Shown in pieces: positions 1 to 58,016 of a stretch of DNA of 64,000 nucleotides. Each line of letters opens with the position of its first letter. The first letter of the stretch is position 1. A program made the position numbers and the translations under genes. Below the pieces are notes generated by a model, which did no database searches, was not told the DNA's origin, and worked only from the letters and a program-made list of their open reading frames with translations. This DNA comes from Neoechinorhynchus agilis (Eukaryota; Animalia; Acanthocephala), in the NCBI GenBank assembly GCA_051530055.1, contig CM121342.1, positions 716,797 to 780,796 of the forward strand. Reading direction: 5' to 3'.

Positions 1-345
1 CAGCACAAGGTGGATTTTGAAAAAACGGCATTCCTAACCAGCGAACCGGATCTAATAAGAAGACTGATTCTTGAGGCCATTCACATCCGGGGAAGTCCAA
101 CGATGGAAGGCAACAAATCAAACTTTACTCTGGTGCAACAAAAGTTGCGTAGCATGACGAGCAAATTAGTCGGCAACAAACCGCAAGAGGTGTGTGTGGA
201 TCGAACCCCCACACTTCGGGTATTAGCAAACCCGCGGATCTGAGCTACATCCAAACGCGACCGACTGTGCATGCTGTTTATATTGTCTCCGCTTTAGATA
301 GAGACTGAAGAGGCAAGGAAAACCGTGCGAAATATTTCTCAAATA
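1..345 (+). mobile_element. 3' end of a Penelope-like element (GIY-YIG C-terminal tail plus pseudo-LTR)
   Basis: QHKVDFEKTAFLTSEPDL...GNKSNFTL aligns with the tail of the Penelope element at 50.5-50.7 kb (QHSVGFKKAKFIHEEADL...GNKSNFTL). The pLTR motif gggtattagc..cccgcggatctgagc is shared with 52215-52250. Confidence 0.8.
301..340 (+). ncRNA. Minimal type I hammerhead ribozyme in Penelope pLTR
   Basis: GAGA (stem I) - CTGAAGA - G - GCAAGG/CCGTGC (stem II) - GAAA - TAT - T17 - TCTC (stem I). Stem III is the palindromic tetramer ATAT. Confidence 0.7.
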
Positions 346-976
346 AATGAGTAACGGCAACACCGCTGACAGGATTCGCCAACGTACAATCAAATCCACC
401 TCGAGGACAATGATATATGACAATAAAAACGTAATGTTTCTCTGATAAAAACAACAACAAAAAACTAAGAGCTAAAGCAGGATTTGGTCCATAATGTTGA
501 CAAATGCAATGTTTCTAAACAAACGCTGAAAGAATACGTGTAATCAAGCGAGAGTTTTGATTGTTGACGTGTACATTTTTAGGCATTACAAAACATAAAT
601 ATTATTGGGGATTATTGTTAAGGCGAGCCTCGTAAGGGTTTCATCAACATTTTTTGCATGCTAGTTGCTATACCCGAACTTAACCTTTACGAGGTTCGTA
701 GAGAACTTCAATAAACTCTTCATTGCGAATGAAGATTTCTAAACAATAATCCTCAATAATATTTATCCCGTTAACTTCTAACATATCGACATTTACACCA
801 AAAAAATTAAAGATTACATTCTCGTTGGTTAGAGATTTGTTGTTATTTAGGTCGCTTGTCGACGACACCCGAGAAGAGAGATCATTAAAGACGAATTCAC
901 TAAAGTCGACTGCTTGAAGTGATAATGAATGATTCGATCAGTCGAATTGTACGTTTTGAGGTTATTGCCATTTTAG

Positions 977-8300: not shown

Positions 8301-9009
8301 TCCGTGTTTATTAATTGATAAATATACCAGATCTGATTGCTTGACGATGGAAGTTGAGGTTTTATGACCACGACAACAATTGATTGCGAAAACATTTTTA
8401 TTGGACGTATAAATATTTTGATTACACATATTTGAGTTTTGGTAAACACAAAATTAATCGATTTTCTGCGGAAAATACCAAATATAAAAGAGCGCCTATA
8501 AAAAATTAATCGTGTACCATCTTCAATTAAATCGCAGTTATAGGCTCATGGAGAAATTATGACTGATATTTAAGCTCGTAATATCGATAGAAAAAATTCT
8601 TAATTAATATTAAATAATGCAAAATACTGTAATGAGCACCGTGTATGTCAAAATGAAAGCATTAAAGTCACATCGTTTGCTTACAGCATTTAGAAAAAAT
8701 TATTCGATTTCATCATCTTCGATGTTTCACTTCAACATCATAATTATGTCTTTATTTTGCTCGTCTTCAAATAACCGTGTATTTATAATTCATACAAAAT
8801 TTACAACCTCAATATCTTTTAAAATGCAGTTTAACAACACATTTTATTTATTTTGTTTAAGAAGAGCGCCCGTGTACCTCTGGGTCCTTGTGATCACTTT
8901 AGAGTTGATGAGGGATCCGGTGTGGATGACGGATCCGGAGGGTGACGGTCGACGACGACGAGAGGTTATATAATAGAGCAAAAACTTATTGCAAACTAGT
9001 TTTTTGAAA

Positions 9010-9265
9010 TATTATGGAAAGCCTCCTTTCCCAACACCCTCATGTTTTATTCCAGATTTATTATCGAACGGAAAATGGGTGTTTTATTTATTTCTTGCTT
9101 CAGATTTTCGACGCCTTGCGTCTTCGTCAGGAAGTTTTTCTTGCCCTCCTCTGATTCCTTTTCAGATAACCGAAGAAAAGCTTCCTGACGAAGACGCAAG
9201 GCGTCGAAAATTTGAAGCAAGAAATAAATAAAACACCCATTTTCCGTTCGATAATAAATCTGGAA
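9010..9265. repeat. Palindromic hammerhead-bearing element, copy A, flanked by ttttttgaaa direct repeats
   Basis: Arms 9049-9135 and ~9176-9265 are reverse complements. Highly similar to 52391-52691. The 10-bp direct repeat lies at 9000-9009 and 9269-9278. Confidence 0.9.
9180..9218 (+). ncRNA. Minimal type I hammerhead ribozyme (intact core)
   Basis: GCTTC - CTGACGA - A - GACGC aag GCGTC - GAAA - ATT - T - GAAGC: 5-bp stem I, 5-bp stem II, palindromic AATT stem III. Confidence 0.8.
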
Positions 9266-9770
9266 TTTTTTTTTGAAAAGAATTTCAATAGAAAATTTCA
9301 AACCATGAACCTCGACGGGCAAAATTATGAAAATGATAGTAATATAAAGCTATGAAATGCGCGAATTGAAGAATTATTTTTACGGGCTTAGCCTCTCGTT
9401 TCTCCTTACTTCTTAACAACGGGCGGTGTTTTTCTTGTTAGACAATTCGCCCACTACAGACTCAGGAGAGGACTTTAACCGTTTTAAATCTTAATCTGCC
9501 GTTGCGCTTCCACGGCGTTTCGAACCAATTTTAAGATCGATTTAAAATGTCGTTTAACCATCGGGATCTCCTGAAATGTTTTTGTCCTTTCGATTTAAGA
9601 CTGGGACTTGGGTAACATTAAGTTCTTCCAGATCAAACACCGAGGAAACCTTAATTCAAACATGTCGATATGATTCGGTTGGTTTTATTCAAAACTTTTA
9701 GTTGTTGGGTTGTTATATTCAGCGGAAAAGGTAAAAAATTATACCAAAGAATGGAGGAAAAGGTACTTTT

Positions 9771-12115: not shown

Positions 12116-13218
12116 CGCGCTTAAATTAATTTCTTCACTTTAACATTCAGAGCACCGGGCAGAAATCACATTGCGTCAACACCGATTACAGCTATCGCAA
12201 TGCTTTGTTTTAAATAAACAGTTGGATTCCCCTTGTCCATACCAGTTCTAGGCCAGCTGTTTAACGCTGATCGGATCCCCGCGCAAGAAGCGAGCGTACC
12301 CGTTTGGATACGTCGAACAAACGCGGAGCGTAGCTATCGCTGCCCACAGTACGCAGCACCAAGTTCCGTCCTCGAAATCGACTCTTTCGCAAGAGCAAAT
12401 AACTGAGACAGATCCAAGAGTCGACAACATACTGCTTCTCGCGACAGCCCGGCCAGCTCAGCTTGTAGAGCCAATCCTTTTTCCGAAGTTACGGATCTAA
12501 TTTGCCGACTTTCCTTGCCTACGTTTCCCTATCGACTAGAGGCTACTCACCTTGGAGACCTGCTGCGGAAATCAGTACGAACAGGTACGGTCTGAATATT
12601 CTCGCACCCAGATTTTCAAGGACAATACGAAGCGCTCGGTACATCGCAGGAATCGCGCTGCATTACGGAACGTGTACTCTATCAACAGACGATCTAATTC
12701 CAGGGATAAAGTTCCTAACAAAGAAGAGAAAACTCTTCCCCAGACTTCGTATAGTTATTCTCTGGGATTGCTCGTGTCACCACTTATGCTGAACATCATC
12801 TGCCCAAGAAGAACATCTGAATAGATCAAGCATAAATCGCATCCTGGCTCGGGAATATTAACCCGATTTCCTTTCGATTGTATTGCGCAATGCAACACGC
12901 TTAATCACGAATTTGCACGTTTTCTTAGGATCGGCTGATCCATGTCCAAATGTTGTTCACGTGGAACCTTTCTCCACTTCAGTCTTCAATGCTCTCATTT
13001 GAATACTTGCTACTACCACCAAGATCTGCACTAGCGGCGGTTCCACTCCACCTCACGGTGCAAGTTTCAATACCACCGCATACGCCCTTCTACACGTCAA
13101 GTCATTTGTACATTTGTGTCTGGCATCGACGGTCAAGCATGGATATACGTCTCCAGCGCCATCCATTTTTAGGGCCAGTCGATTCGGTAGGTGAGTTTTA
13201 CACACTCCTTAGTGGTAT
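12116..13218 (-). rRNA. Isolated ~1.1-kb internal fragment of 28S (LSU) rRNA, probably a pseudogenic copy
   Basis: Reverse complements of conserved LSU blocks in the expected order: ttcttcactttaacattcagagcaccgggcagaaatcacattgcg, ttccgaagttacggatc, ccttggagacctgctgcgg, gggaatattaacccgatt, ctactaccaccaagatctgcac, cagcgccatccattt. No 18S or 5.8S nearby. Confidence 0.92.
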
Positions 13219-16661: not shown

Positions 16662-17137
16662 TCGTGCGCGTGCTTCTTGCAGTTCAGTGTATATTCCACG
16701 TTGTCTGCTTTGGCAAGCAGCAAGAAGGAAATTCTGCATTATGTGATTCTGGTAAGAATCGGATACATTCACCGGTAAAAAAAAGATAACAACTATCATG
16801 ACAACTCGTACCGAAGCACATTTCGACGTTCACTTTAAGTTCCTACATCATATTGGCAATTCGTGGATGGAAAATTTGCCACAATTAACCACCAAATTTA
16901 AATAGAAAATACAGAAAAGTTCTTCCTTAATTTTCACATTCAATGCACGGCTCGCAAATATCTAAAAAAAATCGAAACACTAAACTCGTAATTCTGATTA
17001 GAATCGAATTTTAGCCAGAGAACGTTTACTTAACGATTATGACTTCGTTGAAAAATCGCTCGCCCCGGTCAAAACAGGTTTTTTAATTCGGAAATAAAAA
17101 AGGTAAAGTGAATTACTCTTAATTAAATGTTGAGATG

Positions 17138-17237
17138 GCCATTATTACATGGCTGATCATTTTCCATGGGCACACAGAACATCAATGCGAGCCAGGGAAG
17201 CGCATCCTAAGGAAAATGATCAGCCACGTAATGATGG
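17138..17237. repeat. Short 27-bp inverted repeat (hairpin element)
   Basis: ccattattacatggctgatcattttcc ... ggaaaatgatcagccacgtaatgatgg with a ~45-nt spacer. Confidence 0.6.
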
Positions 17238-17529
17238 TAAATTCAATACTTAATAAAAAGTAACCGGCTAGCCAGACGTAAGGCAAAAATTACTCTTAGT
17301 TGACATGCGAACACGCAATTATTAGCTGATATTAAAATTCTTATAACCTTTCAATATGGTTTGACGTATTTTGTTCGGCAACGAAGGACTAAAAAGATTT
17401 GCATTTTATATTTGAGTTTAGAATCTAAGAAGCGTGATTTATAATGTGGAAATTAGTTTTTGACCAAAAATAAGAAATTCTTGAGAGAAACATCTCGATT
17501 TTTTAATTCCTCAGTTTTTGTCAGGAATT

Positions 17530-18900
17530 TTAAAATTGTGATATGGACAACTGATAATTTCTTAATATAAACCGCCTTTCCCGCAAAATTCTTGTAATCT
17601 CATTAAGTGCTTCAATAGAAGGAAATTCAAGAAAATAAATCATGAGCGACCAGACGTATTTTTCATACTTTCTAATACTTAAAACCGAAATTATCTTTGT
17701 TTCCTTCCGGTTTCGCCCTCTTAAACAAAAAAAATAAGTGCCACCAAAATCAGCACGGTGTTGAAAAGTCTCTTGATGATTCGAAATGGCCGAGAAATGC
17801 TCTAATTGACTGTAAGCTTGCCAATGTTGGGCGATTCTCTTCTTAATGTCTTGCATCGTTCGCTCGAAATTCACTCTATCACACTGTTCACAGTGCATTC
17901 TGTAGATCCCATGAGTCGGCTCAGTATTACCTTTCCTCTTGCATGTGTTTCTAAGGACGATTCCTTTATTATTATAGAGTCGAATTCCAGTCTTCTTACT
18001 CATAATGGAGTAAATCATGTGATTATGCTCATAATTGATGAAATGCATTCTTATGAAGCATACAGATTCTCCAGACGATTTGTTTTGTTTTGTGGTCGGT
18101 GGTTACAGCTTTTTATTCAACGACCTATTATCCAATGAGATATCCCGTCATTTTCAACTTGACTATTTTGTCCCTTTCCTTACTCCACGTAACTCGAGTG
18201 GACGAGGTCAGGGAGTCTCTTCTGAAATACGAAGTGACCGTACAGATATTATGTCTCACCGATGGATAATTAGACCACTTTGGTGGTCCCCATGGCACGT
18301 TTGGCTTACGAATTAAAGCAGTGGTTAATTTTCCTTGCATTGGAAGATTAAGCAGAAAGTCCAGAAACGAAATCTCACCATTGTCATTCTCTCTCGATTG
18401 ACTGTGCGCTGTATGTGTTATTTTACACGACTATGAAGTTCCAAGAAAATGGACTCATAATCGTGCATGTAGATGCCGTCCAAGGTCGGAGCAAGCGGCG
18501 AGCCCATGGCTACAAATCTTAGAAATAACCCTCAAATTCAAAGAAAGTTATACTCGTGCACCACTGGATTAGGGAAAACCCGGGTACCGAGGTCCAAACG
18601 TTGTTCGCTGCAATGCTTAGTAAGATAGCAAATAATTCAATCGTTTTGGTCAAAGGGACATTGGTTAACAGAACGTTCACATCGGCCGTAAACATTCTGT
18701 AGAGTTTAACGTTAACTTCCTTGGTCTCATTCGCAAACGTAGGTCCATCCTTGATGTGCGAAGCGGAAGTTGTTAAAATTAATGTTAATAAAACACTGAT
18801 CCTTTTGGATTAGGCGATGATTAAAACACATATAACTGGTTTTAATGGGATGGTATTGAAGGATGGGCTTGTGAATCTTCGGGCTGTGTCCAACACAATG
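17530..18900 (-). mobile_element. Degenerate Penelope-like retroelement (RT + GIY-YIG), interrupted on the right by the non-LTR element
   Basis: GIYRMHCEQC...KKRIAQH...SAISNHQE (GIY-YIG). SPKIHKP, SHIKDGPTFA, FTADV and GEISFLDFLL parallel the element at 50.3-52.4 kb. Stops and frameshifts present. Confidence 0.8.
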
Positions 18901-18992: not shown

Positions 18993-20291
18993 ATGGCCCA
19001 AAGGTTATCAATGTTTTCGCAACCTGTTGTTGCGGCGGAGGGTGGCAAACGGCCACCCAATACTCTGAAAATACCTATATCGTCTTCAACAAGAGAGCTA
19101 TTGCTCTCTAAACCAAACAACCCAAGCAGCTCTCACGAGGAACTTATCTTCCTGGAGGCACCATTGAAGAAGAAATCCAATGTTATTACTCTAAAAGCTA
19201 ATCCCACTCTACCACGTGAAGAACTATTCAAACGCTTCCTTTCCCCTTGGCTTAAAACGCTGAACGACGACATCATAAGAATCAACTCTACTACATACTT
19301 CGCAGGTCAATTAAAAATATACTTCAATGGTAATCTTCATCTAAGCAACTTTCACAAGTTCATCGAAACGAATTGTGACACGTCCGGAGTTCATCCTGAA
19401 ATTGACACTGCAGATAAAAAATCGTTCGAGAACAAATTTGGATGCGAGATACTATTCTTCCTCAAATCGGCTCGTACAGCCAAGTTTATTCCCAAGGCGG
19501 TAGTAAAAGCTCCGGCCGACCGAAGGGACGCACTGATAAAGGAGAGATGTTGCTTCCAGGGGATGGAAGTTAATTTTTCAATGAATGATATTTCAAGATT
19601 AGACGACTTTACGTTTCCACGGTGCAGCATTTGGCAATCCTGGGGACATTGGTCCCAAAGATGCCCCACTAAAAAGTCCGTTTGTGCGTTTTGTGCGCGG
19701 AACCACCATTCGTCAACTTGCCCGAAGGACTTAAAATGTTGCGCTAACTGTAAAAAGGAAGGACATTGTGCTTTCTCGAAATCATGTCCAATTTTCAAAC
19801 AATATCTCAATTGGGCTCAAAGGACATACACAAATAACAGTGCTAAATCAGTACGTCCGGCTCCAAGTAAGATAGCAGCCCATGAATCTGCTCCCCCACC
19901 GCCGAACAAATGGCCCTCTGAGCGAACGTCCCCGGACGAAGTTTCTATCGACGAAAAACTTCGTCACTTTTCGGATAAGATCATGCAGATGGTAGATCTC
20001 CGAATAAATATGGCTATACAAGGAATCGAGAAAAGATTGGCCTCTCATCTGGATGCCCTAATGGCTACTATAACATCACGTTTGGACAACTTGTTTCCTC
20101 ACGGATCTATAGACAGCCCGATTTCTTGCAAACGTGTTCGTAAAGCGTCTCCTGTCAATCCGAACCTATCCAACTCAGATGTTGAGATGCACGAGAACGA
20201 ACTCTTCGTTCGGGATATTATCCAAGAACAATCTCAGGTTTGTGAAACGGGAGTTCACAAACTTATTCAAGAATGCTCAGTACGGAGTTAA
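18993..20291 (+). CDS. Non-LTR retrotransposon ORF1 (gag-like, three zinc knuckles), module 1
   Basis: CSIWQSWGHWSQRC, CAFCARNHHSSTC, CANCKKEGHCAFSKSC, followed by a predicted coiled-coil region. Confidence 0.85.
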   Translation: MAQRLSMFSQPVVAAEGGKRPPNTLKIPISSSTRELLLSKPNNPSSSHEELIFLEAPLKKKSNVITLKANPTLPREELFKRFLSPWLKTLNDDIIRINSTTYFAGQLKIYFNGNLHLSNFHKFIETNCDTSGVHPEIDTADKKSFENKFGCEILFFLKSARTAKFIPKAVVKAPADRRDALIKERCCFQGMEVNFSMNDISRLDDFTFPRCSIWQSWGHWSQRCPTKKSVCAFCARNHHSSTCPKDLKCCANCKKEGHCAFSKSCPIFKQYLNWAQRTYTNNSAKSVRPAPSKIAAHESAPPPPNKWPSERTSPDEVSIDEKLRHFSDKIMQMVDLRINMAIQGIEKRLASHLDALMATITSRLDNLFPHGSIDSPISCKRVRKASPVNPNLSNSDVEMHENELFVRDIIQEQSQVCETGVHKLIQECSVRS

Positions 20292-22689
20292 GGATCGTGC
20301 AGTGGAACTCTGGCGGACGGGTTAGTATCCATAAACTGCTCTCAGAGGCCTGGCGGTGCAGCATCATCTTTATTCAGGAGTCCAAGTCTGTCTATAATGT
20401 TCACGACCTACCTCAAGGTCTAAGCTCACTGACCGAACAATTTGTCTTATTCTGTACCCCTCCTCATTCGCCCAATTCCCAAGGTCTACTGTCTTTTTTC
20501 CTGCCTTCTCTCGGTCCCACACAGATCACATCGTTTTCCTCCGATGATCTGTCTTATTCAATTTTTTCAGTTTGTATTAAAGGCTCTAAACTTCTGTTAG
20601 CTAACATCTATGTCCGGCCCCATAAGATACATCTCCCTCGCAATAAGTCCATTTTGAAGAACATCTTAGGGTCAGGTATTGACTTTTGTTTTGGCGACTT
20701 TAATGATCCTTCGCAGAAATGGATCAATTCTATTATTCGTTCTGGAGAATCCCACAACCTCATTACGCCCGATTATCCTACTTTTACTGACGGATCTTCA
20801 TCCTCGTACCTGGATCTGTGTATATACCGAAAAAGTGGCTTCTACAAACCTATTTTAATTTCTCAATCCTCTGTATTCCAAGTCGCTGGACACGACGTTT
20901 TAACTTGGGAGCTCGACAAGAACGTTCTGTTATCGCGAAAGTTCAAATTGGGATGGTTAAATGTTAGTCTCTTTAATGCTGCTACCCGCTTTTATCTCTC
21001 TGGGTCAAAATCCACCGAGCTTAAAGATATTAACAATTTTTTGGCTGACACTAGTAACAATTTCCTTACCACAGTTAGGAGATCAGTAGGAGTACCTCGG
21101 AAATCCAACCTATTATCCCTTTATGGTAGGGAACTCTTTAAAGCTAAGGCAGCGGGCGACACTAGATCCTGTAAGTTTTGGTCATCTCTTTACTGGCCGT
21201 GCAAGGTCAGATTCCAGATCGCCCAAGATCGCAAAATGATCAGCAAGTATCTACCCCATTCATCGGAATGGTGGAGAGTTGTAAACCGGAAACGCTCCTT
21301 CCCTGGAAAAGGGCAGCTGCAGCCTGGATTAGATCTTCAGGCTTTGATACAGTCATCAGGGCGCTTTGTTCCGAACACTCGAATGAGGCCAGTCCGATCC
21401 CCATAGCCAGTAACTTCATACTTCCCAAACCACGGAGAATTGATCTCACCAAAAAGGATTTTTTACAGTGGTGGACCTCTAAGAACCTCACCTCATGCAA
21501 CGGCTCTTCAGCCTGTTTTAAAGCAACCAACGTTTTGAGCAGGGATAACATAGCATCCTTGGCCAGTGTCATGCTACTAGCCTCTCCTGAAGAATGGTCA
21601 GAAATTAATATTTCAAAAAGGATTTTCCTACGCAAGGGTAAGGTTCGATCAATATCTTCTTCGGAAAATGTGAGACCAATCTCTATCCAAAACTCTTTGG
21701 TTTCCATCTATGAGAGAGTCTTGGCAAAGCGGATTGTCGAGTTCTCCTGTGAGCATGATCTCATCGATAGACGATGCCATGGTTTCGTTCCCGGCAGATC
21801 AGTTCATTCCGCTATGAACGAAATTATACGTAATTTTGGACAGAACCGTCGTGCCATGAATATCTTGATTTCGTTTGATATCAGCAAGGCATTTGACAAT
21901 ATTAATATCGATTTTATCCTAAATATCTTACGCTTTTTTAACTTTCCTTTCAATTACATAGCTAGGGTTCACAATACCCTGAAGTCCAAACGGTTTTTCT
22001 TCTCGGATGATCCCGCTCGCTTGGTTTACTATCAGGTTAAAGGAGTTCCCCAAGGCTCTCCTTTATCACCGATTCTCTTCTGCTTAGCCTCCCAATATAT
22101 TGTTCAAAACTGTAAAATCTGTCGTTCAATCACCATGTACGCGGACGACCTCACCGTGGTTATAAAAGAGGGCAACTATGTACAAGCTCAAAAGAAGCTT
22201 GCAGCAGTTCTCAATTTCCTAAAAGAAAAACTTCCACACATGGGGCTTGCACTAAATAATAATAAGACCAAGTTTTTAATAAAATCAAAATCCGTCGTTG
22301 GTAAGCGACACATTAGAGACTTTGTCAAGAGGTTTTTCGCCCTTGATTTTTTCCCGGTTTTTCATAGACTCAACATTCTGGGTTTTACCCTCAGTAGTAA
22401 TCTGTCATTCTCGGCTGACCTGAATAAGATGAAACGACTCTTCAAATGTGCTAATGCCAAAGCAAAGCGTGCTGCCCGACTAGGCCTCAATCTTAAGTCT
22501 AGCAAATCTATATGGAACGCGTGGGCCATATCTGGTCTAGTCTTCTATTCTAGAGGACGACCGCCCGAACAACGCCAGAGCTTCCGATGCACCTTCCTGA
22601 GACTCTGCTCCACTCTCCCTTTCGCATGGGCAAACACCGTCGACTGGACCGCCAAAGTGGATAAATGGACAGCCATCGGCAATGATTGA
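20273..22689 (+). CDS. Non-LTR ORF2 (APE endonuclease + reverse transcriptase), module 1, with a 1-nt frameshift at ~21300
   Basis: APE motifs QWN, IQES, GDFN. RT motifs RPISI, HGFVPGRS, DISKAFD, GVPQGSPLSP, YADD. The frame switch KRSF/PWK aligns with module 2 RYIPWK. Confidence 0.9.
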
Positions 22690-22733
22690 AACGTTTGATT
22701 GACTCAGTCTTTCTCACATGGTCCTTTGCGAAT

Positions 22734-24249
22734 ATGCGCACCAATGTTTTGGCGGAGGGTGGCAAACGGCCACCCACTTCCCTGAGAATTCCCGTACCTC
22801 CGGAGGTTCGGAGTAGTATTCTCAAAGACATGAAGCGCGACAAACAGCCATCAATCACTGATTCAGGATCGAATCCCACTTCTCAGTTCCTGTTGGAAGG
22901 GTCCCTTTCTGATGAAATCCCCCAACAGCTGACATCTTCATTCAAAACTCAACGCGAGTACCTAGCCCTTCCGGTCAAGAGATGGCCGTATATACTCACA
23001 ATCAAGTCAAATCCGATTATGCCTAAGGACGTAATCTACAACCAAAGCGTTGCTCCGTGGACGCGCTCATTCCATAACGATGGAGTTAAACGAATTGATC
23101 GTATTACTTATTTCGGAGGTATTCTGAGAGTGTACCTAACGGACAGTATTTGGTTATCCAACTTGAAGGACTTTGTTAAATCCAAGCTTCCCAGGGATGT
23201 CTTCTCGGTGGAAGAGATTACTCAAAGGGTACAGTTCATGGCTAACGGTCTACAGCCCAATTTAGCTGCTGAAGACAAAGTAGAGTTCGAAAAACTTTTC
23301 AACGTGAAGATAAAATTTTTCCTCAACTCCAGAAGGTCTGGCACTCCTATCTCGATAGCGATGGTGGAAGGATCCAGGCAAGTTAGGGATGACCTCTGTA
23401 AAAAAATGCACTGTGCCTTTAATTGTTTTGCGATTCGATTCACACAGAAATCGGGAAGCCATCAAGATGACTATATTTTTCCTCACTGCAACCTTTGCCA
23501 CAAATGGGGACACTGGGTTCAACATTGCCCCAATCCGGATTCCCCGAAATGTGTTCACTGTGCTGAGACAGGTCATTCTGCTCAAAATTGCCCAAACAAG
23601 TCAATCAAAAGATGTGTCAATTGCAATGGACAACACTCTGTATTTTACAAAGGATGTCCTGAATTCAAGAAGTATTGGAATTGGGCTCAAAACGGGCAGC
23701 CCTTTGCTAAAAAAAGCGATAGCGCCGGGTGGAGACCGGCTGTCGCAGCAAACTCGTTCGCAGTGCCTCTTCATAGAGCAACCCCCTTTTCAAAAGATAA
23801 CGATCTTGAAGAGCTCGGACTCTAAAGACTCGCATCGCTTACCTCCATCGCAGTTGGTTACCATGGAAATTCTGGAGGAACGTTTAGAGGAGTCTTGTAA
23901 CAAACTTCTAACGGTCATGCAGGCGCGCTTCACTGAGGCCATCGTGGCTTTTGAGAGGAAGCTGAGTACACTCATTGGGAACTTGGTCAATCTTCCTGAT
24001 TTGATTTCATCGAGTTTACCTAGTCAACGTGGTGCAAAGCTAAAAAGAGCGAATGCGACGGAAAAAAACTCTCATGGGGCCAAGAAACTCAATGTCGATT
24101 CTAGTATAAACCACTCAGATATCGAGGACGTCGTCATGGAAGTCGAAGAAACCGACTCTGAATATGTTAACAGGATCATTAACACTCAATCCTCGCTCAT
24201 TAACAACGGAACTGCGGCCCTAATATCAGATGAAGTCGCCAGAATATGA
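22734..24249 (+). CDS. Non-LTR ORF1 (gag-like, three zinc knuckles), module 2, with a 1-nt frameshift at ~23785
   Basis: CNLCHKWGHWVQHC, CVHCAETGHSAQNC, CVNCNGQHSVFYKGC. The C-terminal half continues in the 23389 frame and parallels module 1. Confidence 0.85.
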
Positions 24250-24255
24250 TAACTC

Positions 24256-26723
24256 GAAGGCACAGGTAATGGTGGGGATCTCCGGGTGCTGCAATGGAAT
24301 TTTGGAGGGGCGGCCAATCTTACCAGGCTCGCTCGGTTCACACCAGGCGTTTCCATCATCCTACTGCAGGAAACGAAAAGTATTCACACTCTACACCAAC
24401 TTTATAACTATCTACCTCATCTTAACTGTTCAATGTTCTCCTCTTTTATTACTGGCCCATTCAGTCCCGCCTCACAAGGTCTTATTTCAATTTTTCATTC
24501 CTCCTTAAATCCCCAACTTATAGCCTCCTACACCTCACCGGAAATGTCGTACTCACTTTTTAAATTTCTCTTTAATCGGAAGTACCTCTCGATTGTTAAT
24601 TTGTACATCAGACCGGGTTTTATTCATCGTCCATATATCAAAAACAAAATCAAATGGCTTCTCAATGCCAATATCGACTTTGTTGTGGGGGATTTTAACG
24701 ACCCATCTTTAAAATGGTCCAGAGCCATTGTCAACGCAGTCAAACTTCTTTACTCTCTAACCCTCCCGAATACTCCGTCTTTCCACAATCTCGTATTAAA
24801 TACACACTCGTTCTTAGATCTGATAATCTTTAAGAGATATCTTAACTTTTCAATTCAATTCGATCGTCAGGTGTCTCTCTTTGACCTCCTAGGGCATGAT
24901 ATCCTTATCTGGTCATTCGGTCCTATGAATGCACTCCGCAAATCATATCACATTTCTCCACTCAACGTGGCCTTTTTCCGTCTAATCAGCCAAATCGCTC
25001 TATCTTCGAGCACCTTACAATCTAATCGGTCATCCATTTTACCGTCTGTCAATAACATCCTCAATTTGGTTGCTAATACCTTTCTGTTTCGAACGGTAAA
25101 GGTTTTCTCTCGTCCTTACGAAAGTCGCTCTCTTCGCTTTCTCAGACGCCAACTTTTTCTGGCCAAACGTTCTGGAGACGTACTTCTCACGAAAATCTTA
25201 TCTAGTCATTATTGGGCAGCCCAATGTCGACAGAGGATGCAACAGAAAGCAAATCTTCTTAATAGCCTGAAACCCTTTTCCTCACATTGGTGGAACACTT
25301 TTCAAAGGAAGAGATACATACCATGGAAATCGAAAATCTCCGGCTGGTTAAAATCAACGTCTATAGACGATATTTTGGGAACCATTTTTGCTTTTCATTC
25401 AGAGGGCTCTGTCAAGGATGCTTTACCCGTGACAATCTTTCGACGGGTCTTTGCCGGTCGTGTAGATATTTTATTAAGTGACATCCTAAAAGTATGGTCC
25501 GACAATCCGAAATTGGCATCCTCCAACTCAAGCTCAGGCACCAAAATCTTTACTTTACTTCCCCGGGACTGCATCCTAAGGCTGGCCGAATTAATGCTGA
25601 ACTGCTCCCCTTATGCTTGGAGAGAGATTAATGTGGCTCGGCGTATTTTTCTTATTAAAAATGGGAAAAAGTCAGTCTCTCAGCCTAAGGATCTCCGCCC
25701 AATTTCCCTACAGAACCCCTTTGTGACCATTTACAAACGAGCCTTAGCACTTCGCTTGAGAGCCTTTATAACAGAAAATAGCTGCATATCGACTAATTGC
25801 CACGGTTTTCAAAAGGGGAAATCCGTACACTCTGCTTTAACCAATATTTACGATAACTTCACTAACACCAATCTACCCTTGAAAGCCATAATGGCTGTTG
25901 ATCTATCTCAAGCGTTCGACAAGATATCTTTGTCTTTTATTATGGAGATATTAGAATTTTTTAGCGTCCCTCATAATTTGATCTCCCGAATTCACAATAT
26001 TCTTTTTACCAAGTCCTTCTTTTACGAGGATGATGCTTCGAAATCAACCTATTACATGACCACGGGTGTCCCACAAGGTTCACCGCTTTCCCCGATCCTG
26101 TTTCTACTTGCTTCGCAGTATATAGTTAAAAATTTCAAAACCCGTAATGTTTCTATAACCTGTTATGCGGATGACTTAACTTTCGTATTCTCTGCGCACA
26201 GAGCTTTCAAACTCAAAAGTTTGATTGAGCAGTGCATCCACTACCTCAATGTAGTCTTACCTCGTATGAATTTATCCCTCAATCCCTCCAAATCGTTCTG
26301 TATCTTCAAGGTTCGCTCAGGTAAACTTCGAAGGGATCTCAAATCTTTTTTTAACAATCTAATGAACCCCTTGAATCAGAAGCGAGCGGATAATGCCAAT
26401 ACTCCACTAAAATTACGCATTCTTGGACATACGTTAACGGTCAATCTGTCACCCAGAACCGATATCAATAAGTTGAAAAGGTTGCTAAAAGTGGGCAAAA
26501 AAATGGCCAACCGAGCGATGAAACTAGGCCTGAACTCGTTACAAGCGCAAGCTATTTGGAAAACCTGGTGTATCCCCGGCCTTGTCTTCTTTTCCAGAGG
26601 TCGCCCCCCGAACATAAGGCCTCCTTTATAGACGCCTTCACCCAGCACCTAGATTCCCTCCCATTTTCCTGGGCCGGAGACTTAAAGTTCTGTGAACCCA
26701 GAATTGGGCGATGGACAACATGA
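24256..26723 (+). CDS. Non-LTR ORF2 (APE + RT), module 2; true C-terminus reached via a 1-nt shift in the C6 run at 26604-26609
   Basis: QWN, LQET, GDFN, RPISL, HGFQKGKS, DLSQAFD, GVPQGSPLSP, YADD. The shifted tail PPEHKASF..LPFSWA..RWT aligns with module 1 PPEQRQSF..LPFAWA..KWT. Confidence 0.9.
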
Positions 26724-41613: not shown

Positions 41614-43765
41614 ATGGATCTCCGTGAACAATTCATGCAATTTCAGTCGGAATTTAGCCGACTTGTAATGGACAGAAGCGCAAATCCGCTCATTAACAAG
41701 AATCTACCATCACTACCGGATGGAATTAGTGATCGATTCAAGCGGTTGATTGAATATACCATTGGACAAGGAAAGTGTTTTAGATCGATCCTTTTTCTTC
41801 GAATATTTGAACACCTCCGTGAATATAATAGCAAACTAAAGGATGAGAAATATATAAGTCAGCCTTTACGCTTTTAAGCGAAAATGAATTGTACGTTTTG
41901 GAATGTTTTCTCATTTGTTCTTACCAACAAAACATACGCGATTTCGTGCATTTTTATTTGCCAATATTTAAGTTTCATTCCTGGAAGTTATCTAAGAGCC
42001 TTTTTATTATTTGTAGTAAATATCAAAGAAAATAGCAGCCCTTTCCAAAATTTTTCTCTAATAATTCGGCTTCATAGAAAAACGCTGCAAATTAGCTATT
42101 AACGTGAATCTTAAAAATTTATAAAGATTTACTTTGGATCGAGACGGCTAAGCGGAGAAAATGGCACAAAAATGTTTACAAAAAATCATTGGCCAGTCGA
42201 TGTAGCATAGAATTTAAAGGTTTTGGTTTTTGTAGCCGGAGCATGTAACCTTCCTTTATTTCCTTTTTAACCAACTCGTATCGCTTTTAAATAAAACGAT
42301 GGATTCTGGCGATCGCATGGTCTATCGAGGTGATCCAAGCAGCGCTTCTTATCGCAGATGATCTGATGGACCAATCATCGCTAAGACGAAATAAACCATG
42401 CTGGCACTTGGTTTGTGGAGATAATCCTCTAGCTGCTGTCAATGATGCGTTTTATCTCATATTTTTGATATTTTGCCTTTTCGATAAGCTTAAGATTGAA
42501 GAAGGTGTCGAGGCTGGATTTAATGACCACGTTTACATTCAAATTGTACGCCTGTTCCACGAAATGTTATATTTTACAACCGTCGGTCAAGCAATGGACA
42601 TGGACTCCTTTAAATTCAACGAAAAATCCTTTACGGAAGTAAACCATCTACTGGACACTTACAAGAGGATTTGTGAGTACAAAACCACCTTTTATGCTCG
42701 ACCAGATTTTGTTTCGCTTTTCCAAATGCATTCTTTTTTCTCTTTTGGATTCATACAATTTACGCCTACCGAAAATCTCTAGAAATTGTGCTATTTAGAA
42801 TAAAACAAAAATCATCAAGTATTTATGTTATATTCTTGTTGTGCAGATCAAACCCCGAGAACTATTCTTATTACTTAATATTTCGTAGACATAATCCACC
42901 TCTTCAGACATTGCTTGTAATTTTTTAACTCACATATTTAAAAACTTGCAAACAATGTCTGACGAGGTGGATTTTGTCCACGAAATATTGATATTTATGT
43001 TATGATACGGTTGACATTTTATTTATACGGCTATCCAATAAGTAGACTGGTTTAAGACTTCAATGCACCATGTAAGGGATCGGTTATTTAGAGCTAATGT
43101 TGATCCTTCTGTAGCCTGGCTTCGGACACACCTCAATCTGTTAGTCATTTGTACCGAGCATGCAAGTGGCTTATTTATCATTAGGTTATTGAAGGCCGTC
43201 ATGATCGACTTCCATTTATCCATCGCATTTTCCTTCGGAATCCTTCTAAAATCTGATCATTTACACGATAACGTTTCCAGTTAAAGCAGCCATCATCGCA
43301 GTGTCTACCGAAACACCGATATTTTCAATTGCCTTTGAAAAGTTCACTTGTGATATAGGTCGTCTCTTCCAAATGATGGATGATATGAAAGATTGGGTAG
43401 GTGGATCAAGCGGTAAGACTCATGGAGTTGATATCCGGGAAGGAAAGTTGACTTGGCCGCTAATAAGTGTTATTTCAAGCAAACTAGACTTTGAAGATCG
43501 TCAAAAACTGATTCAAAATTATGGGAAGGAGAATGAGACAAGTGTAGGCATAGTCATTGGGCTCTATGAAAAGAACGAAATTCTAAAGAAATTTCACTCG
43601 GAAGTAAAATCGTTATGTCGCAATGTGAAACTTGTTGTCAGTAAAGAGTTGCCCTTGGAGTTTGACAAGATTGCACGAATGATTTTATTTGAGCTTACCA
43701 ATATGGGGCAAAAAGATGGAATTATTAGTGACCTCAGTTTGGTCGATCTGTATAATGGAGAATAA
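41614..43765 (+). CDS. FPPS-like trans-isoprenyl diphosphate synthase, 3 exons with atypical junctions
   Basis: GKCFR, AWSIEVIQA..IADDLMD..LRRNKPCW, AVNDA, GQAMDM, YKTTFY, GRLFQMMDDMKD, DIREGKLTWP match the FPPS motifs. Confidence 0.85.
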
Positions 43766-45021: not shown

Positions 45022-45093
45022 GGGAGTGTAGCTCAGTGGTAGAGCATTCGACTGCAGATCGAGAGGTCCCCGGTTCAATCCCGGGCGCTCCCT
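45022..45093 (+). tRNA. tRNA-Cys(GCA)
   Basis: 72-nt cloverleaf: GGGAGTG/CGCTCCC acceptor stem, TAGCTCAGTGGTAGAGC D-arm, CTGCAGA anticodon loop, GGTTCAATCC T-arm. Confidence 0.97.
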
Positions 45094-49788: not shown

Positions 49789-50344
49789 GTGAGAGAGCGA
49801 ATGATTTTACACTCTCGACTCGTTATCGCCTCCTTTTATACCCACGACGTTTTCAAACACAACGAAATGTAGTTGAGTAAATCGGTCGAAAACAAAAATG
49901 CATTCAATGGCAAGGTTGTTAAGGTTGTTTAGGTCGTTCAAGTCAACAAATGAAGTGTTTTTCCCATTCTAAAGTAAAATTCAAACATGAAACGTAAATG
50001 TTGAGCTTTAAGCGTGCACAAGAAATCAAAAATTCTAACTCTGGATTTTCTTGGCCGTCGTTCTGGCATCAATAATCGCCTGAAACATATTTCAAATTTA
50101 CTAAAGCTAAATTTGGGAATAACTAATCTCTTTTGTCTTTATTCAAACCATCTTCGATATCCCTTACTGAAGTCTAGCTGAAACTTGATTCGCTCTTTGA
50201 ATAATTTACTTTGACGCTCCTTCTTGGGAGCAGTTTCAAACGCAACATACTTAATATATCATAGAGAATTGTCGTCGGAGCGAATTTAATCGTTTTTTGG
50301 CGACTAGTTCCCCTGGGATAAGTTTGCATTGACATAATTATTAT

Positions 50345-50388
50345 TAGAAATATTTCGTGAACGTTGTGTTCACCTCTTCAGTCTTGTC
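50345..50388 (-). ncRNA. Minimal hammerhead in the 3' pLTR (sense to the ORF)
   Basis: AGA-CTGAAGA-G-GTGAAC acaac GTTCAC-GAAA-TAT-T-TCT. Confidence 0.65.
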
Positions 50389-52280
50389 TAAAAATACACA
50401 CACTGAGTGTTAGGCTTTTCAACTCGGATCCGCGGGTCCGCTATGCCCGATTACGACGTTGGTTTCGTGCGTACTCTCTGCGTTTCGATATCGATTTTTG
50501 GTTTTTGTTTTTGGTTGTTTATCTATCAAGACGGGCAATGCTAGGGTGAAATTTGATTTGTTCCCCCCATTGTTGGATTATTATCGATTTGGATGGCTTC
50601 CAATACCAATCTCCTTGCTTAGATCAGCTTCCTCGTGAATGAATTTTGCTTTTTTAAAACCTACTGAGTGCTGTGTCTTTTCTTGGTGATTGGAGATAGC
50701 CGAGACCGCATCAAACTTTCTGCATGCTTGTTTGTGCTGCTGTACTCTCTTTTTTAGACCCTGCTTCGTCTGTCCTATGTATGAGAGACTGCACTTGTTG
50801 CATGGGATTTTATATACTCCTTGATCTGTATTTCTTACATTCCTCTTTTTTAGGATCCCGGTTATGGTAGGACCTTTCCTGCTTCTGATTCTAACTCTGA
50901 GCAATGATTTGTGCAGGCAGTTTAGTATTTTGTATGAGGCATCACTGACGAAGTTGAAGAGGAGATATTTGATTGTGTTTTGTGTGCTTTGTGTTTTTTC
51001 TTCGATGGCGTTGCGAGACCGATTTGGGGATAGCCTCGTGCCTGGAGAGAGTATTCTATGTTCTTTTTCTCTAACTTGAAGTCCTTAGTCGATATTATTC
51101 TCCTCGCTCATGTAAAATAGGATATCACTGTGGCTAGCTTGTACTTGATGGGCTGGTGGCTCGTCCAATTAGGTGGTCCCCAGGTCCTATACATGGATGG
51201 AGTTCTTCGGACCATAACATCCAGGAAAGGTATGCCCCGTCCACTTCCTGGGTAACAGACCACTGTATGTGGCTGTCAGCGGTGTTAAGGTCTGTGTGCA
51301 ATTGGTCAGTCTTCAGCTCTTGATCCGTTACTATGAACGTGTCATCGACATATCTGACCCACCGCTTGATATACTTGTGCTTAGATGTGAAGGTATCTTC
51401 CCATCTCCGCATGTATAGATCTGCCAGGGTGGGTGCCAATGGGGATCCCATTGCATTGATCGTAGTACATTTGTTCAAACTCGAAAGCCGTCCTACGTGT
51501 GCACCACTCTATCAGTGTTGACCATGTCTTTTGATCGAGGCTTGGCTCCAGACATTTCTCTTCCAATATTTGGCTGCCAAGGCGATGGTTTCTTTTAATG
51601 GTATGTCGGTGAATAATGAATGGACGTCTGCTGTGAAGAGTCGTTCTGTGTTGTACCGTTCGTTCTTGATCATCGTGGCAAATGAAGGACCATCCGCAAT
51701 GTAAGACGGAGCTGTGGATAAGGCATCGCGAATTAACGAGTTGATTTTCTTGGCTAGTTTGTGGTTGAATGAATTGTAACTGTAAATTATTGGTCTCCAT
51801 TCCAGGCTAGGCTTATGTATATTGGGAGACATATAATAAAGCACTTGGGCCGTAGTTGACCTCGTTTGTTGGTAAAATGTCTCAGATACTTTGGAAGCTC
51901 TTATCAATTGCTTCAATAACGAGTTCAAGCTTGTTTCTCTCTTTTTTGTGGATCTTGTTCCAGTTTGGCGAATTTATCACTGTTTAGGAGGGTCATGACT
52001 GCGTTCCTGTAGACTACCTGATCAACCGCCACAGTGGCTCGCCCCTTGTCTGCTTTGAAAATGACTGTATTGGTTAGTTTTTTCAGATTCTTAAGAATGG
52101 CATAGTCCCTATCATTGTTCCTTGAGTTGTCGTATCTGGCGTGTGAGTCATATGTAGCCATGTTGCAGGTTATCGATATCCAAACGCAGGGAGTAAGCAC
52201 GAAACCAACGTCGTAATCGGGCATAGCGGACCCGCGGATCCGAGCTAAAAGGCCTAACACTCAGTGTGTGTGTATTTTTA

Positions 52281-52325
52281 GACAAGACTGAAGAGGTGAA
52301 CACAACGTTCACGAAATATTTCTAA
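52281..52325 (+). ncRNA. Minimal hammerhead in the inverted 5' pLTR
   Basis: Same motif as 50345-50388 on the opposite strand; core at 52288-52294, GAAA at 52313-52316. Confidence 0.65.
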
Positions 52326-52390
52326 TATTAATTATGTCAATGCAAACTTATCCGGGAGTAACTAGTCGCCAAAAAACGATACTTAATATA

Positions 52391-52691
52391 TTATGGAAAG
52401 CCTCTTTTCCCAACACCCTCATGTTTTATTCCAGATTTATTATCGAACGGAAAATGGGTGTTTTGTTTATTTATTGCTTCAAATTTTCGACGCCTTGCGT
52501 CTTCGCCAGGAAGCTTTTCTTCGGTTATCTGAAAAGGAATCAGAAGAGGGAGCTGACGGACAGCGTTGCCCTCCTCTGATTCCCTTTCAGATAACCGAAG
52601 GAAAGCTTCCTGACGAAGACGCAAGGCGTCGAAAATTTGAAGTAAGAAATAAATAAAACACCCATTTTCCGTTCGATAATAAATCTGGAAT
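52391..52691. repeat. Palindromic hammerhead-bearing element, copy B, flanked by 12-bp direct repeats atacttaatata
   Basis: ~125-bp arms with a ~20-nt loop. Direct repeats at 52379-52390 and 52690-52701. Confidence 0.92.
52605..52643 (+). ncRNA. Minimal type I hammerhead ribozyme (intact core)
   Basis: GCTTC-CTGACGA-A-GACGC aag GCGTC-GAAA-ATT-T-GAAGT. Confidence 0.8.
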
Positions 52692-53074
52692 ACTTAATAT
52701 AATTTTAACGACTTATTGAGAGCAAGACTAACTTTCACAATTAATAAATTGAACCGCCGGCATGAATATTTATATGAACGTTCTTAAACAATGCTCCAAA
52801 TAATGACGAATTGGGTTGTAGCTTTGAATTGCAATCAAATTCAGCTAGTTTATTTCGTTCTTTGAATTTCAATCGTTTTTGCAGTCCTTACCTGCTGTCG
52901 AGGTCATGCGGAGATTTGATAAATAGCATTTTTAAGAATATTTCCCCCTTCTAGAAACTTGAATTTTTCGCTATGCCGTTTCATTATTAGAAACAATTAG
53001 ATTTATGGTGTGAGCTAATCACTGGCAGAAAATATTTATTAAAGCTGTCAGATGCTGCGTTTGCAACCTATGAA

Positions 53075-55924: not shown

Positions 55925-58016
55925 CAGCAAACTTTTGAAGTACTGAATATTGACAACTTTCAGATGCATCTCCACCTACAAGTAAATTAAACATCTTATT
56001 CACAAAGACTCTCCAGCTTTCCTTTTAGGACTTTCGATTAATATGTGCAAATGCGTAAATGTTTTATTGATTGAACGATTGATAATAGCGGCTTGCTCAG
56101 GCCCTCCTACAAATTGTCCTAGTTAACTCCCTGTTAATCATCCAAAAAAGTCCTTGCAATAAACAAGGTTATAAAGGTACTGATTAATGAAAATCATTTG
56201 ACTAGGAATAAAACTGCTGAATTATATTGAGCTCCACTTGTGCTCCATTTTAACTTTTTCGTTTTTCGAGTCAAGCTCGTTAAAAAATTAAGCCAAATAA
56301 GCGGGAAGCGATTTGTATCGCGAAATTCTAAGAGATTGAGACGAATCACTGCCGATCCGAGATCAGGAGCATTCGTCCTACAAAACATAAGTCTATCTGT
56401 GCAACGAGGGAACATCAGAGAAGTGATATGACCACTTAAACTCTGATGGAACTTTAAGAGTTCGTACTTCTCTCTGGATCCTCAGATACATCCAGGAGGT
56501 TTCATCCCGCGAGTTTTCGAATCGTTGATCGTTTTCACGAAAAATATATTCGTTTGATATTATTTTTATACGAATGCTTTTGAAAATGTCGGATTTTTTG
56601 TATCTCATTTTTGAGACAGCAATACAAATTATCCCGAAACTCGAACTTTCATGGCGCTTCTTTTGCTGAAAAATGTCTTTGATATGTGAATCTGTTGAAC
56701 TTTTTGGCATACTGTACATAACGGGAGTGTAGCTCAGTGGTAGAGCATTCGACTGCAGATCGAGAGGTCCCCGGTTCAATCCCGGGCGCTCCCTTTCAAA
56801 ACGACCATTTCCACCAAATTTTATAACAAACATTCAAGCACAAAGCAAGTTGAGATTTTTTCGAAATTCGCATTCCATAAGAGAACACCGGAGATCGGAT
56901 TTTTGATGCTGCCAGAGATCATCCCATTGAAGGTAATCCTGATAACAATTTTTAAACTTTAGGTATTTTTCTCGAATTGATTTATTCACCTTTCAATTTT
57001 TGGATTATGCTGCCAAATGTAAGAAATTATAAAACTCGAACACGGCTGAGCTCATCTTAAAGCACACTTATAAAATTTTTATCTTACATTTAAAGAAGTA
57101 AAGTGACGTAGTAAAGGCGAAATGCTTCTGAATGCGTTTACAAGATTGAACCGAAAACATCGATTAACATTTCCCAATTGGGTTTAAATTTTTTATTCCG
57201 AAGATCGTTCTGTCGATGTAAACGACCTTTTCTCTAAAGTTTTATTGTGCTGTTGTTTGTTTATGTTGCTGGCAAATTCTGAAATTAAATAATAGAGCAA
57301 AATGAAATACTTTTAGTTGCAATTTGATAGCGCGAGGTTTAATTTGTATTAAATTTCCGACACGTATAAATATATCGTTTTTCTTTGAAAATGTCTTAAT
57401 TCCATTATTCACGATTGAATGTTCTTTATACGGCAGAAAAAGGTCGAACATCTCATATTTCAGGCAATCGAACATTAAAAACTTTGAGTTTTTCGAGTTT
57501 AGAATCTAAGAAGCGTGAGTTATTGATGTAGAAATTAGTTTTTGATCGACAGTAAGAATCTCTTCACGGAAACATTTCGATTTTCGTTAAATTTTTTGTC
57601 GACAAGTTATTCTTTTTAATGTCTGAGAACGTCAAAGACACCAAATCTTTTATAAAATTTAAATTTATAAAAGAAGGTCAGGCTGATCTAAGAAAGGTGA
57701 TAACTCTTTAACTTGGTTCAAGTTATATTTTCTTTTAAATGTGTATAACGGGCGAGTTTCTACCTAAATAACAATGCAGCAGAAAGCATGTTTTAAATAA
57801 GGTCGGCTCTCAAAGTAATCTTCGACAATAATCAAAAATTGACCTCTACGCTTTTTTTAATTAATTTCATGGGCGCAAAAAAGTTGTTTTGATCTTCATT
57901 GGGCATTCGTTATTCACCGATATTTTTTGCTTTGAACTGCAATGAGAAAAGCTCTCTACTTCGCGTTAATGTGATTTTAGTTCTATATTTCGTTAGACGT
58001 CCTACAGAAAAACTTT
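55925..58016 (+). repeat. ~2.1-kb segmental duplication, copy B
   Basis: Near-identical to 44224-46322. Confidence 0.95.
56723..56794 (+). tRNA. tRNA-Cys(GCA), duplicate
   Basis: Identical to 45022-45093. Confidence 0.97.

Follow-up and report, generated by a model that had tools for sequence, protein, structure and literature searches.

Two hammerhead-bearing foldbacks of Neoechinorhynchus agilis as highly probable products of PLE integration

The DNA analysed was a 64-kb stretch of the genome of the acanthocephalan Neoechinorhynchus agilis, referred to here as the window; a flanking sugar transporter gene assigns it to chromosome CM121342.1 of assembly GCA_051530055.1. It contains two foldbacks of one family, F5, designated hairpin A and hairpin B, and a coding Penelope-like element (PLE), PLE#1, which lies directly left of hairpin A. 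Both foldbacks are flanked by target site duplications (TSDs). The features of hairpin A are:

52379..52390: left TSD, ATACTTAATATA, which doubles as the right TSD of the adjacent PLE#1
52391..52427, minus strand: tail, 37 nt, found on the left arm only in both copies; in the sense direction it reads ...CUGGAAU-AAAACAUGAGGGUGUUGGGAAAAGAGGCUUUCCAUAA
52428..52550, minus strand: left arm, an inverted, 5′-truncated copy of a PLE 3′ terminal region
52476..52514, minus strand: left-arm hammerhead, with A6 changed to G (CUGGCGA), a change private to this arm
52551..52568: spacer at the tip, 18 nt
52569..52691, plus strand: right arm in sense orientation, ending ...CUGGAAU, without a tail
52605..52643, plus strand: right-arm hammerhead motif, an intact minimal type I motif with a predicted cut at 52638/52639
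52690..52701: right TSD

Those of hairpin B are:

9000..9009: left TSD, TTTTTTGAAA, 10 bp
9010..9048, minus strand: one-sided tail, ~38 nt
9049..9142, minus strand: left arm, truncated ~30 nt earlier than that of hairpin A
9097-9135, minus strand: left-arm hammerhead, defective, with U16.1 changed to C and a G to A change in the outer helix I pair
9143..9266, plus strand: right arm, with an intact hammerhead motif at 9180-9218 and a predicted cut after 9213
9269..9278: right TSD, TTTTTTGAAA

The order of elements is the same in both copies: TSD, one-sided tail of 37-38 nt, arm, spacer, inverted arm and TSD. The arms of the hairpin A inverted repeat (52427-52550 and 52569-52692, 124 nt, with 18 nt between them) are 94% complementary, and those of hairpin B (9049-9142 and 9173-9266, 94 nt, with 30 nt between them) are 98% complementary. 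RNA folding of the entire hairpin A yielded a single hairpin of -207.8 kcal/mol (z = -26). Copies A and B can be aligned over their full length with a single interruption, a central gap of 46 nt. The four F5 arms stop at four distinct internal positions (~96, 124, ~127 and at least 124-142 nt), which fits independent truncation. The spacer of hairpin A is probably a continuation of the right arm in the 5′ direction, because the TTG ahead of CCCTCC is also present in copy B. No third F5 copy was found elsewhere within the window, and F5 copies were absent from a further 64 kb around three N. agilis genes (L002 and L003, 43 kb; L004, 21 kb), which brings the sampled DNA to 128 kb.

A sequence-only reading of the locus had described a foldback of ~300 bp encoding a minimal type I hammerhead on the plus strand, and a second copy with an identical plus-strand ribozyme. 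Both descriptions were borne out, with the motif at 52605-52643 in a foldback whose arms are 94% complementary, and at 9180-9218 within the foldback at 9010-9266. The cuts predicted at that stage, after 52638 and after 9213, agree in position with the motif that we found. The left arms do encode the same ribozyme on the minus strand, as had been stated, with lesions that differ between copies (CUGGCGA in A; in B, U16.1 to C and a second change, in helix I). Each lesion is private to its arm. The earlier proposal that both arms go back to a sequence with an intact ribozyme is supported. The TSDs are also real: ACTTAATATA, 10-12 bp with ambiguous edges, in hairpin A and TTTTTTGAAA, 10 bp, in hairpin B.

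Two parts of the same description needed correction. The element had been called a palindrome; its arms are inverted, but it is not symmetrical, as both copies have a unique extension of 37-38 nt (52391-52427; 9010-9048) at the left end only, inside the left TSD. The repeat begins 37-38 nt inside the left end, after this unique tail, so the inverted repeats do not reach the termini. The element had also been said to have no ORF. Mechanical frames of 77-87 aa do cross the hairpin, but they are interrupted by the 46-nt gap of copy B and there is thus no conserved ORF. An RT or GIY-YIG ORF is present in neither F5 copy; both are truncated.

In both copies the plus-strand motif reads GCUUC-CUGACGA-A-GACGC-aag-GCGUC-GAAA-AUU-U/GAAG(U/C), where the first oblique marks the predicted cut. 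The catalytic boxes CUGACGA ... GAAA and U17 are present at both sites (52605-52643 and 9180-9218). Helix I and helix II are each of 5 bp, an extra unpaired A stands between A9 and G10.1, and a G...C pair closes helix II; G10.1-C11.1 is G-C in 17 of 20 distinct N. agilis hammerheads. Helix III is not closed, and its palindromic positions A15.1 A15.2 U16.2 U16.1 read AAUU in F5 and AUAU in the other families. The published hallmarks of PLE minimal hammerheads are CUGANGA and GAAA boxes, an extra nucleotide between A9 and G10.1, G10.1-C11.1, palindromic positions 15.1-16.1, no loop 3 and a helix I of 4-5 bp (Cervera & de la Pena 2014, PMC4209133). All of them are present in F5, with U at H17. 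F5 differs in its helix II, which has 5 bp where those of Schistosoma typically have 7-8 bp, and among the seven N. agilis families in the sampled DNA it diverges most. We found no published report of PLE minimal hammerheads in Acanthocephala, and the host lineage is new.

A minimal hammerhead descriptor matched only the two F5 sites in the window, and matched nothing in 300 simulated 64-kb windows with dinucleotide statistics matched to those of the real window. When the descriptor was relaxed, the matches in the window were the two F5 sites and the two arms of PLE#1 only, with none in 200 simulations. The Rfam hammerhead models (types I, II, III, HH9 and HH10) gave nothing at the gathering threshold or at E <= 10. 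This was expected, because the models want a closed helix III and the F5 ribozyme is without one. Rfam matches of miRNA hairpins to the palindrome were rejected as spurious. Exact-pattern scans of metagenome contigs and viral contigs for the F5 ribozyme returned nothing.

Covariation was assessed on 11 hammerheads from six families other than F5, aligned by plain MAFFT (alignment A5). Of the cells of this alignment 77.7% pair, compared with 54.3% after shuffling, and the covariation score was 0.607, against 0.173 when shuffled; none of 500 shuffles reached it, and slid registers of A5 scored 0.007-0.155. Helix II is changed on both sides at five of six pairs across families. A model-fitted alignment (A6), which leans towards the structure, scored 0.623 against 0.156 shuffled, again with none of 500 shuffles reaching its score. 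Because MAFFT aligned the F5 ribozyme in a different register from that of the other families, F5 was aligned by covariance model. Model R1, trained without F5, finds 24 sites in the 128 kb and recovers both F5 right arms at full length and in the correct register, with modest scores (19.0 bits, E 0.02, for hairpin B; 17.9 bits, E 0.04, for hairpin A). Helix I of F5 (GCUUC/GAAGC) is a fully compensated substitute for its counterpart in the other families. Helix I and helix II make up the minimum-energy fold (-10.4 kcal/mol) of the 39-mer in isolation and of a single arm. The predicted homodimer fold was a domain-swapped duplex, not a hammerhead dimer; it was set aside as uninformative, because helix III would comprise just four A-U pairs. 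Dimeric variants of minimal hammerheads were reportedly described by Lunse, Weinberg and Breaker in 2017. The sequence hallmarks and the covariation support the view, already put forward in the sequence-only reading, that the F5 motif is a genuine PLE-type minimal hammerhead which would need to dimerise.

Translation of the open frames of the window revealed PLE remnants, with motifs such as AMGSPLAPTLADLYM...RYVDDTF and GVYKIPCNKCSLSYIGQT. Pfam gave weak matches to RVT_1 and GIY-YIG on these remnants, and homologues of PLE#1 have an architecture of RVT_1 with a C-terminal GIY-YIG domain. PLE#1 is arranged as follows:

50247..50258: left TSD, ATACTTAATATA, 12 bp
50259..50288, minus strand: tail, 30 nt, on one side, shared with the L004 copy of family F1, to which PLE#1 belongs
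50289..52171, minus strand: long arm, 1883 nt, with the 3′ region and a hammerhead at 50348-50384
50584 to ~52163, minus strand: frameshifted ORF with PLE RT motifs and a GIY-YIG endonuclease
52172..52380, plus strand: short inverted arm, 209 nt, with a hammerhead at 52285-52323

The inverted repeat of PLE#1 (50289-50495 against 52172-52380) is 92-96% complementary, and the hammerhead in both arms reads AGA-CUGAAGA-G-GUGAAC-acaac-GUUCAC-GAAA-UAU-U/UCU. PLE#1 shares the plan of the rod-like F5 element, save that one of its arms is long enough to retain the ORF.

The 12-mer ATACTTAATATA is present three times, at 50247, 52379 and 52690. PLE#1 and hairpin A therefore share one target, the duplication of which was made twice. 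Arm divergence is similar in the two elements (4-8% in PLE#1, 6% in hairpin A). This may reflect re-cutting beside an existing PLE end, in accord with a report that PLE endonucleases favour PLE termini (Frangieh et al. 2024, PMC11167929).

Inverted hammerhead pairs were found in about nine insertions in the 128 kb, with the F5 copies and PLE#1 included (arms and spacers in nt):

Window, copy A, family F5: arms 123 / 124; spacer 18; tail left, 37 nt; TSD ACTTAATATA
Window, copy B, family F5: arms 94 / 94 (+30); spacer 30; tail left, 38 nt; TSD TTTTTTGAAA
Window, PLE#1, family F1: arms 1883 / 209; tail 30 nt; TSD ATACTTAATATA
L004, 9051-11294, family F1: arms short ~145 / long; tail 30 nt; TSD TTTCATTTTATG
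L004, 12782-13033 (duplicated at 17841), family F4: arms 109 / 109; spacer 11; tail right, ~25 nt; TSD ACATTGCAAATT
L004, 19491-19942, family F3: arms ~142 / ~144; spacer 139; tail right, 27 nt; TSD TGATCGAATT
L004, 15854-16130, family F2: 61-nt repeat, 84%; spacer 115
L003, 9391-9610, F3-like: arms 88 / 88; spacer 22; tail left, 22 nt; TSD GAAAATAGAAATT
Window, 42832-42991, family F7: arms 52 / 52; spacer 9; no tail; TSD TATTTATGTTAT

Eight of the nine insertions carry a tail at one end and none at the other. TSDs of 10-13 bp were likewise identified in eight of the nine, none being read for the insertion at L004 15854-16130. An ORF-bearing copy with a hammerhead in its 3′ terminal region was shown for family F1; no ORF-bearing F5 copy was found in the 128 kb examined. 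As the same shape occurs in many PLE families and in an ORF-bearing copy, these results indicate that the foldback shape is made at integration. No orthologous locus offered an empty site for comparison, the flanking sugar transporter having 55% identity to its nearest relative. The LINE ORF1 protein of the window is not on record in the protein collection, and a search with the LINE RT protein gave two foreign matches only, indicating that the TE genes of N. agilis are largely unannotated.

In the F7 insertion the right arm stops exactly at hammerhead H17 (42989); GA and the TSD come next. The left arm extends 45 nt further, reaching the normal end of the family. This single arm end is possibly the footprint of ribozyme cleavage in vivo.

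We consider it highly probable that hairpins A and B are integration products of the N. agilis PLE family F5 in which both halves were heavily 5′-truncated. An inverted, 5′-truncated copy together with a tail of 30-40 bp at one end is a signature of PLEs (Craig et al. 2021, PMC8557442). In work with a purified PLE protein, the two target strands were each cut and extended, and reverse transcription began at two internal sites on the RNA, the tail being the interval between them (Frangieh et al. 2024, PMC11167929). By analogy with this published biochemistry, obtained in vitro with a lizard PLE, F5 would likewise use priming from both strands and two start sites. The GIY-YIG endonuclease would nick both strands of an AT-rich target with a stagger of ~10-12 bp, and either nick would prime reverse transcription on the same kind of PLE RNA. 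One cDNA would begin at the proximal internal start site and give the arm ending ...CUGGAAU, and the other would begin 37-38 nt further downstream, at the distal site, and give the arm with the tail. Both cDNAs would halt after ~95-140 nt, their 3′ ends would be joined head to head, and filling in of the staggered nicks would yield the TSD. The stretch copied would be the PLE 3′/pLTR terminal region, with the minimal type I hammerhead ~54 nt from its end; as this stretch contains the hammerhead, the product carries the ribozyme once per strand. The presumed task of the ribozyme in the parent element is to process multimeric PLE transcripts, either by dimerising, with the help of protein, or both. 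In the foldback copies it would be without a role.

The F5 copies resemble canonical PLE insertions: inverted, 5′-truncated copies stand head to head, the target is AT-rich and duplicated, the tail is confined to one end, and a hammerhead is found close to the 3′ end. The motif at the end of the F5 tail is similar to that in the tails of other PLE families of N. agilis. They differ in that the halves are cut to ~95-140 nt, with neither an ORF nor a direct pLTR left, and in N. agilis the TSD is consistently ~10-13 bp. Measured from the predicted F5 cut, the proximal end is 54 nt away and the distal end ~92 nt away, a geometry similar to that of the anole PLE (~85-92 nt). The earlier suggestion that the element is retroelement-derived and made by PLE machinery is thus upheld by the TSDs, by the lack of inverted repeats at the termini and by PLE#1, which has the same layout. 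LINE-1 twin priming, described by Ostertag and Kazazian in 2001, is said to involve priming by both target strands on one RNA, resulting in inverted, 5′-truncated halves and a TSD. L1 differs from F5 in that it inverts adjacent segments, not two copies of one 3′ end, and its product has neither tail nor ribozyme. In Schistosoma, dual minimal hammerheads ~100-700 bp apart on opposite strands have been ascribed to truncated PLEs (PMC4209133), and PLEs make up ~15% of the TE content in the only other acanthocephalan analysed (PMC7943196).

The state of the ribozyme in the foldbacks was examined by comparing the four F5 arms. All ten variable sites are private to one arm. Four of these changes lie in 156 ribozyme positions and six in the 313 remaining arm positions, indicating no purifying selection on the ribozyme. 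Transitions account for nine of the ten changes; ADAR-type editing was considered as the source of this bias and dropped, the sites being too few. A transcript of either strand contains one sense ribozyme and one antisense copy, and the ribozyme fold of -10.4 kcal/mol competes with a 124-bp hairpin of -208 kcal/mol. The ribozyme is therefore probably not functional in the foldback copies, as there is no constraint, no same-sense partner and a competing long hairpin. The pattern of changes suggests that the foldback ribozymes have been decaying neutrally since insertion.

Alternatively, F5 might be a distinct non-autonomous hairpin retroelement, the foldback being copied whole by PLE RT in trans, in the manner of SINEs and LINEs, and perhaps acting as a source of dsRNA/siRNA. 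Non-autonomous PLE derivatives are known, including the Chlamys non-autonomous elements (Craig et al. 2021, PMC8557442), and retrozymes have been described as PLE derivatives (bioRxiv 10.64898/2026.07.22.740005). Hairpins A and B are of one family, carry their tails to the same side of the spacer and are a single central gap apart, and the 128 kb held no F5 copy with an ORF. Two observations sit less easily with PLE integration: the F5 arms are all short (~95-140 nt), which also fits a short non-autonomous template RNA, and the single central 46-nt gap also fits a deletion in a hairpin-shaped master. However, any two independently truncated foldbacks align with one central gap, and the left arms share no substitutions against the right arms, the variants all being private. 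Foldbacks with arms of 52-144 nt and spacers of 9-139 nt occur in at least four other PLE families, besides the ORF-bearing copy, and a perfect RNA hairpin of 124 bp would be a poor template for RT. We therefore regard copying of the hairpin as a unit as unlikely. Equally doubtful is an extension of this idea, in which F5 has been freed from a coding master, transcripts of the foldback are retro-copied whole by PLE enzymes acting in trans, and the same transcripts feed anti-PLE RNAi. If this were true, F5 would be a hairpin-shaped, ribozyme-bearing non-autonomous retroelement. That the foldback is a source of dsRNA/siRNA is plausible.

The sequence-only reading had likened the element to viroids and retrozymes. 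In such an element, ribozymes of both polarities would turn rolling-circle transcripts into circular RNAs. In a formal sense each strand does have one hammerhead inside a rod-like fold, and in this the element is like Avsunviroidae and viroid-like satellite RNAs, in which hammerhead sequences of both polarities face each other. The latter are RNA replicons whose plus and minus ribozymes are distinct and under selection, whereas F5 is a DNA insertion with one sequence and its complement: the minus ribozyme is the reverse complement of the plus ribozyme across the whole arm, both minus copies are inactivated by changes, the ribozyme is unconstrained, and A and B are genomic insertions with TSDs. 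Animal retrozymes have related type I hammerheads of PLE pLTR origin (bioRxiv 10.64898/2026.07.22.740005), and the non-LTR retrozymes of animals, as described in Cervera & de la Pena 2020 (cited in Craig et al. 2021, PMC8557442) and in the preprint of Li, Clavereau & Pollet 2026, are like F5 in being short and non-coding, in their type I hammerhead and PLE pLTR origin, and in their presumed mobilisation by PLE RT. Retrozymes, however, are direct tandem repeats in which two same-sense ribozymes excise a circularising unit. The F5 repeat is single and inverted, so that excision of a retrozyme-type unit is impossible; in the absence of tandem repeats no unit-length RNA can be excised, and each transcript contains a lone sense ribozyme, without the same-sense partner that a minimal hammerhead requires. 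The paired polarities reflect one sequence copied in inverted orientation at integration, with the same plan in PLE#1 and in about seven other insertions, of other PLE families. A viroid- or retrozyme-like replicon is accordingly very improbable. Just as improbable is a MITE or foldback DNA transposon with a chance likeness to a hammerhead, or a palindromic artefact of assembly, for which the long inverted repeats and the near-constant TSD length (10-13 bp in eight of nine insertions) might speak. The one-sided tail means that the termini are not inverted repeats, the arms resemble the 3′ end of an RT/GIY-YIG element, and the ribozyme motif covaries and is far too specific to be a chance match. 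Arms that are 2-6% diverged and flanked by TSDs are also not expected of an assembly artefact.

Hairpins A and B thus have the ordinary structure of a head-to-head, doubly truncated PLE insertion, and are not a viroid-like replicon. The finding adds Acanthocephala to the hosts of PLE minimal hammerheads, and the set of integration products fits the model of PLE integration with both-strand priming and two start sites, hitherto supported mainly in vitro. For genome scans, it means that hammerheads of both polarities in a rod are the expected look of a doubly truncated PLE insertion, and that scoring such an element as viroid-like is warranted only if the two ribozymes differ in sequence or if tandem units exist. 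The 12-bp target present three times and the arm that ends at the cut site could inform the mechanism of PLEs if they prove recurrent genome-wide.

The 12-mer ATACTTAATATA borders not only hairpin A, the foldback of family F5 with a hammerhead in each arm, but also PLE#1, the adjoining ORF-bearing Penelope-like element (PLE) of family F1, and so occurs three times in the window. These occurrences are listed here with another foldback, of family F7.

50247-50258, 52379-52390 and 52690-52701: the 12-mer ATACTTAATATA
42832-42991: F7 PLE foldback, with arms of 52 nt, a spacer of 9 nt and the target-site duplication TATTTATGTTAT

With three occurrences of the 12-mer, the duplication was therefore made twice, and one target site has been hit either by two integrations of PLEs of different families or by one compound event. 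At the F7 foldback, the last position of the right arm is exactly the cut-site nucleotide (H17) of its own hammerhead, at 42989, and the left arm extends 45 nt more, reaching the usual F7 3′ end. The right arm may, in this single case, be cDNA primed on ribozyme-cleaved RNA.

Further PLE copies and their neighbours in the window are as follows.

1-417 (+): 3′ end of an F6 PLE, the remainder lying beyond the left window edge
17533-18809 (-): older PLE remnant, with the GIY-YIG motif 'GIYRMHCEQC' and reverse transcriptase (RT) motif 3
18993-26631: two LINE-like elements adjoining the older remnant, with RVT_1 Pfam matches and a CCHC knuckle

The coding sequence of the F6 copy is C-terminal and endonuclease-like. 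Its hammerhead lies at 300-341 and has one mismatch in helix II, and its terminal motif, ...GGACAATGATAT, is similar to the PLE#1 tail, the one-sided extension between an arm and the target-site duplication. No recognisable hammerhead was found in the older remnant. Read by eye, the N-termini of the LINE-like elements are AP-endonuclease-like. An unrelated small inverted repeat downstream of the remnant (17113-17263; arms of 58 nt, 79% complementary, gap of 35 nt) also lacks a hammerhead. At another N. agilis locus (L004, 9753-10528), a 237-nt stretch from inside the endonuclease-coding region of the F1 copy around protein P0123 is repeated in tandem several times (3-4 copies), and the annotated 411-aa 'hypothetical protein' there is made up of these repeats.

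Among the four aligned F5 arms, 9 of the 10 private substitutions were transitions; ten sites are too few to tell whether this reflects the usual mutational bias, errors of the RT or editing of dsRNA.

Outside the PLEs, an isolated 28S rRNA fragment (12239-13017, minus strand; Rfam LSU model positions 1456-2120, 289 and 56 bits) lies in non-rDNA surroundings about 3 kb from hairpin B, the other F5 foldback, and may be an rDNA pseudogene or a retro-copied fragment. Two identical plus-strand tRNA genes (45022-45093 and 56723-56794) are apparently tRNA-Cys, since the anticodon loop of both reads GCA. They lie within a duplicated segment, its copies about 11.7 kb apart, in which the surrounding mechanical ORFs are likewise duplicated. 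Another block is also present in duplicate, near 58 kb and 62-63 kb.

Across the window and three further N. agilis loci (L002-L004), all eight tail-bearing insertions surveyed had the tail on a single arm, never on both. If each strand picked its start site independently, half of the insertions would be expected to have either no tail or two. The two priming events at PLE integration therefore look coupled.
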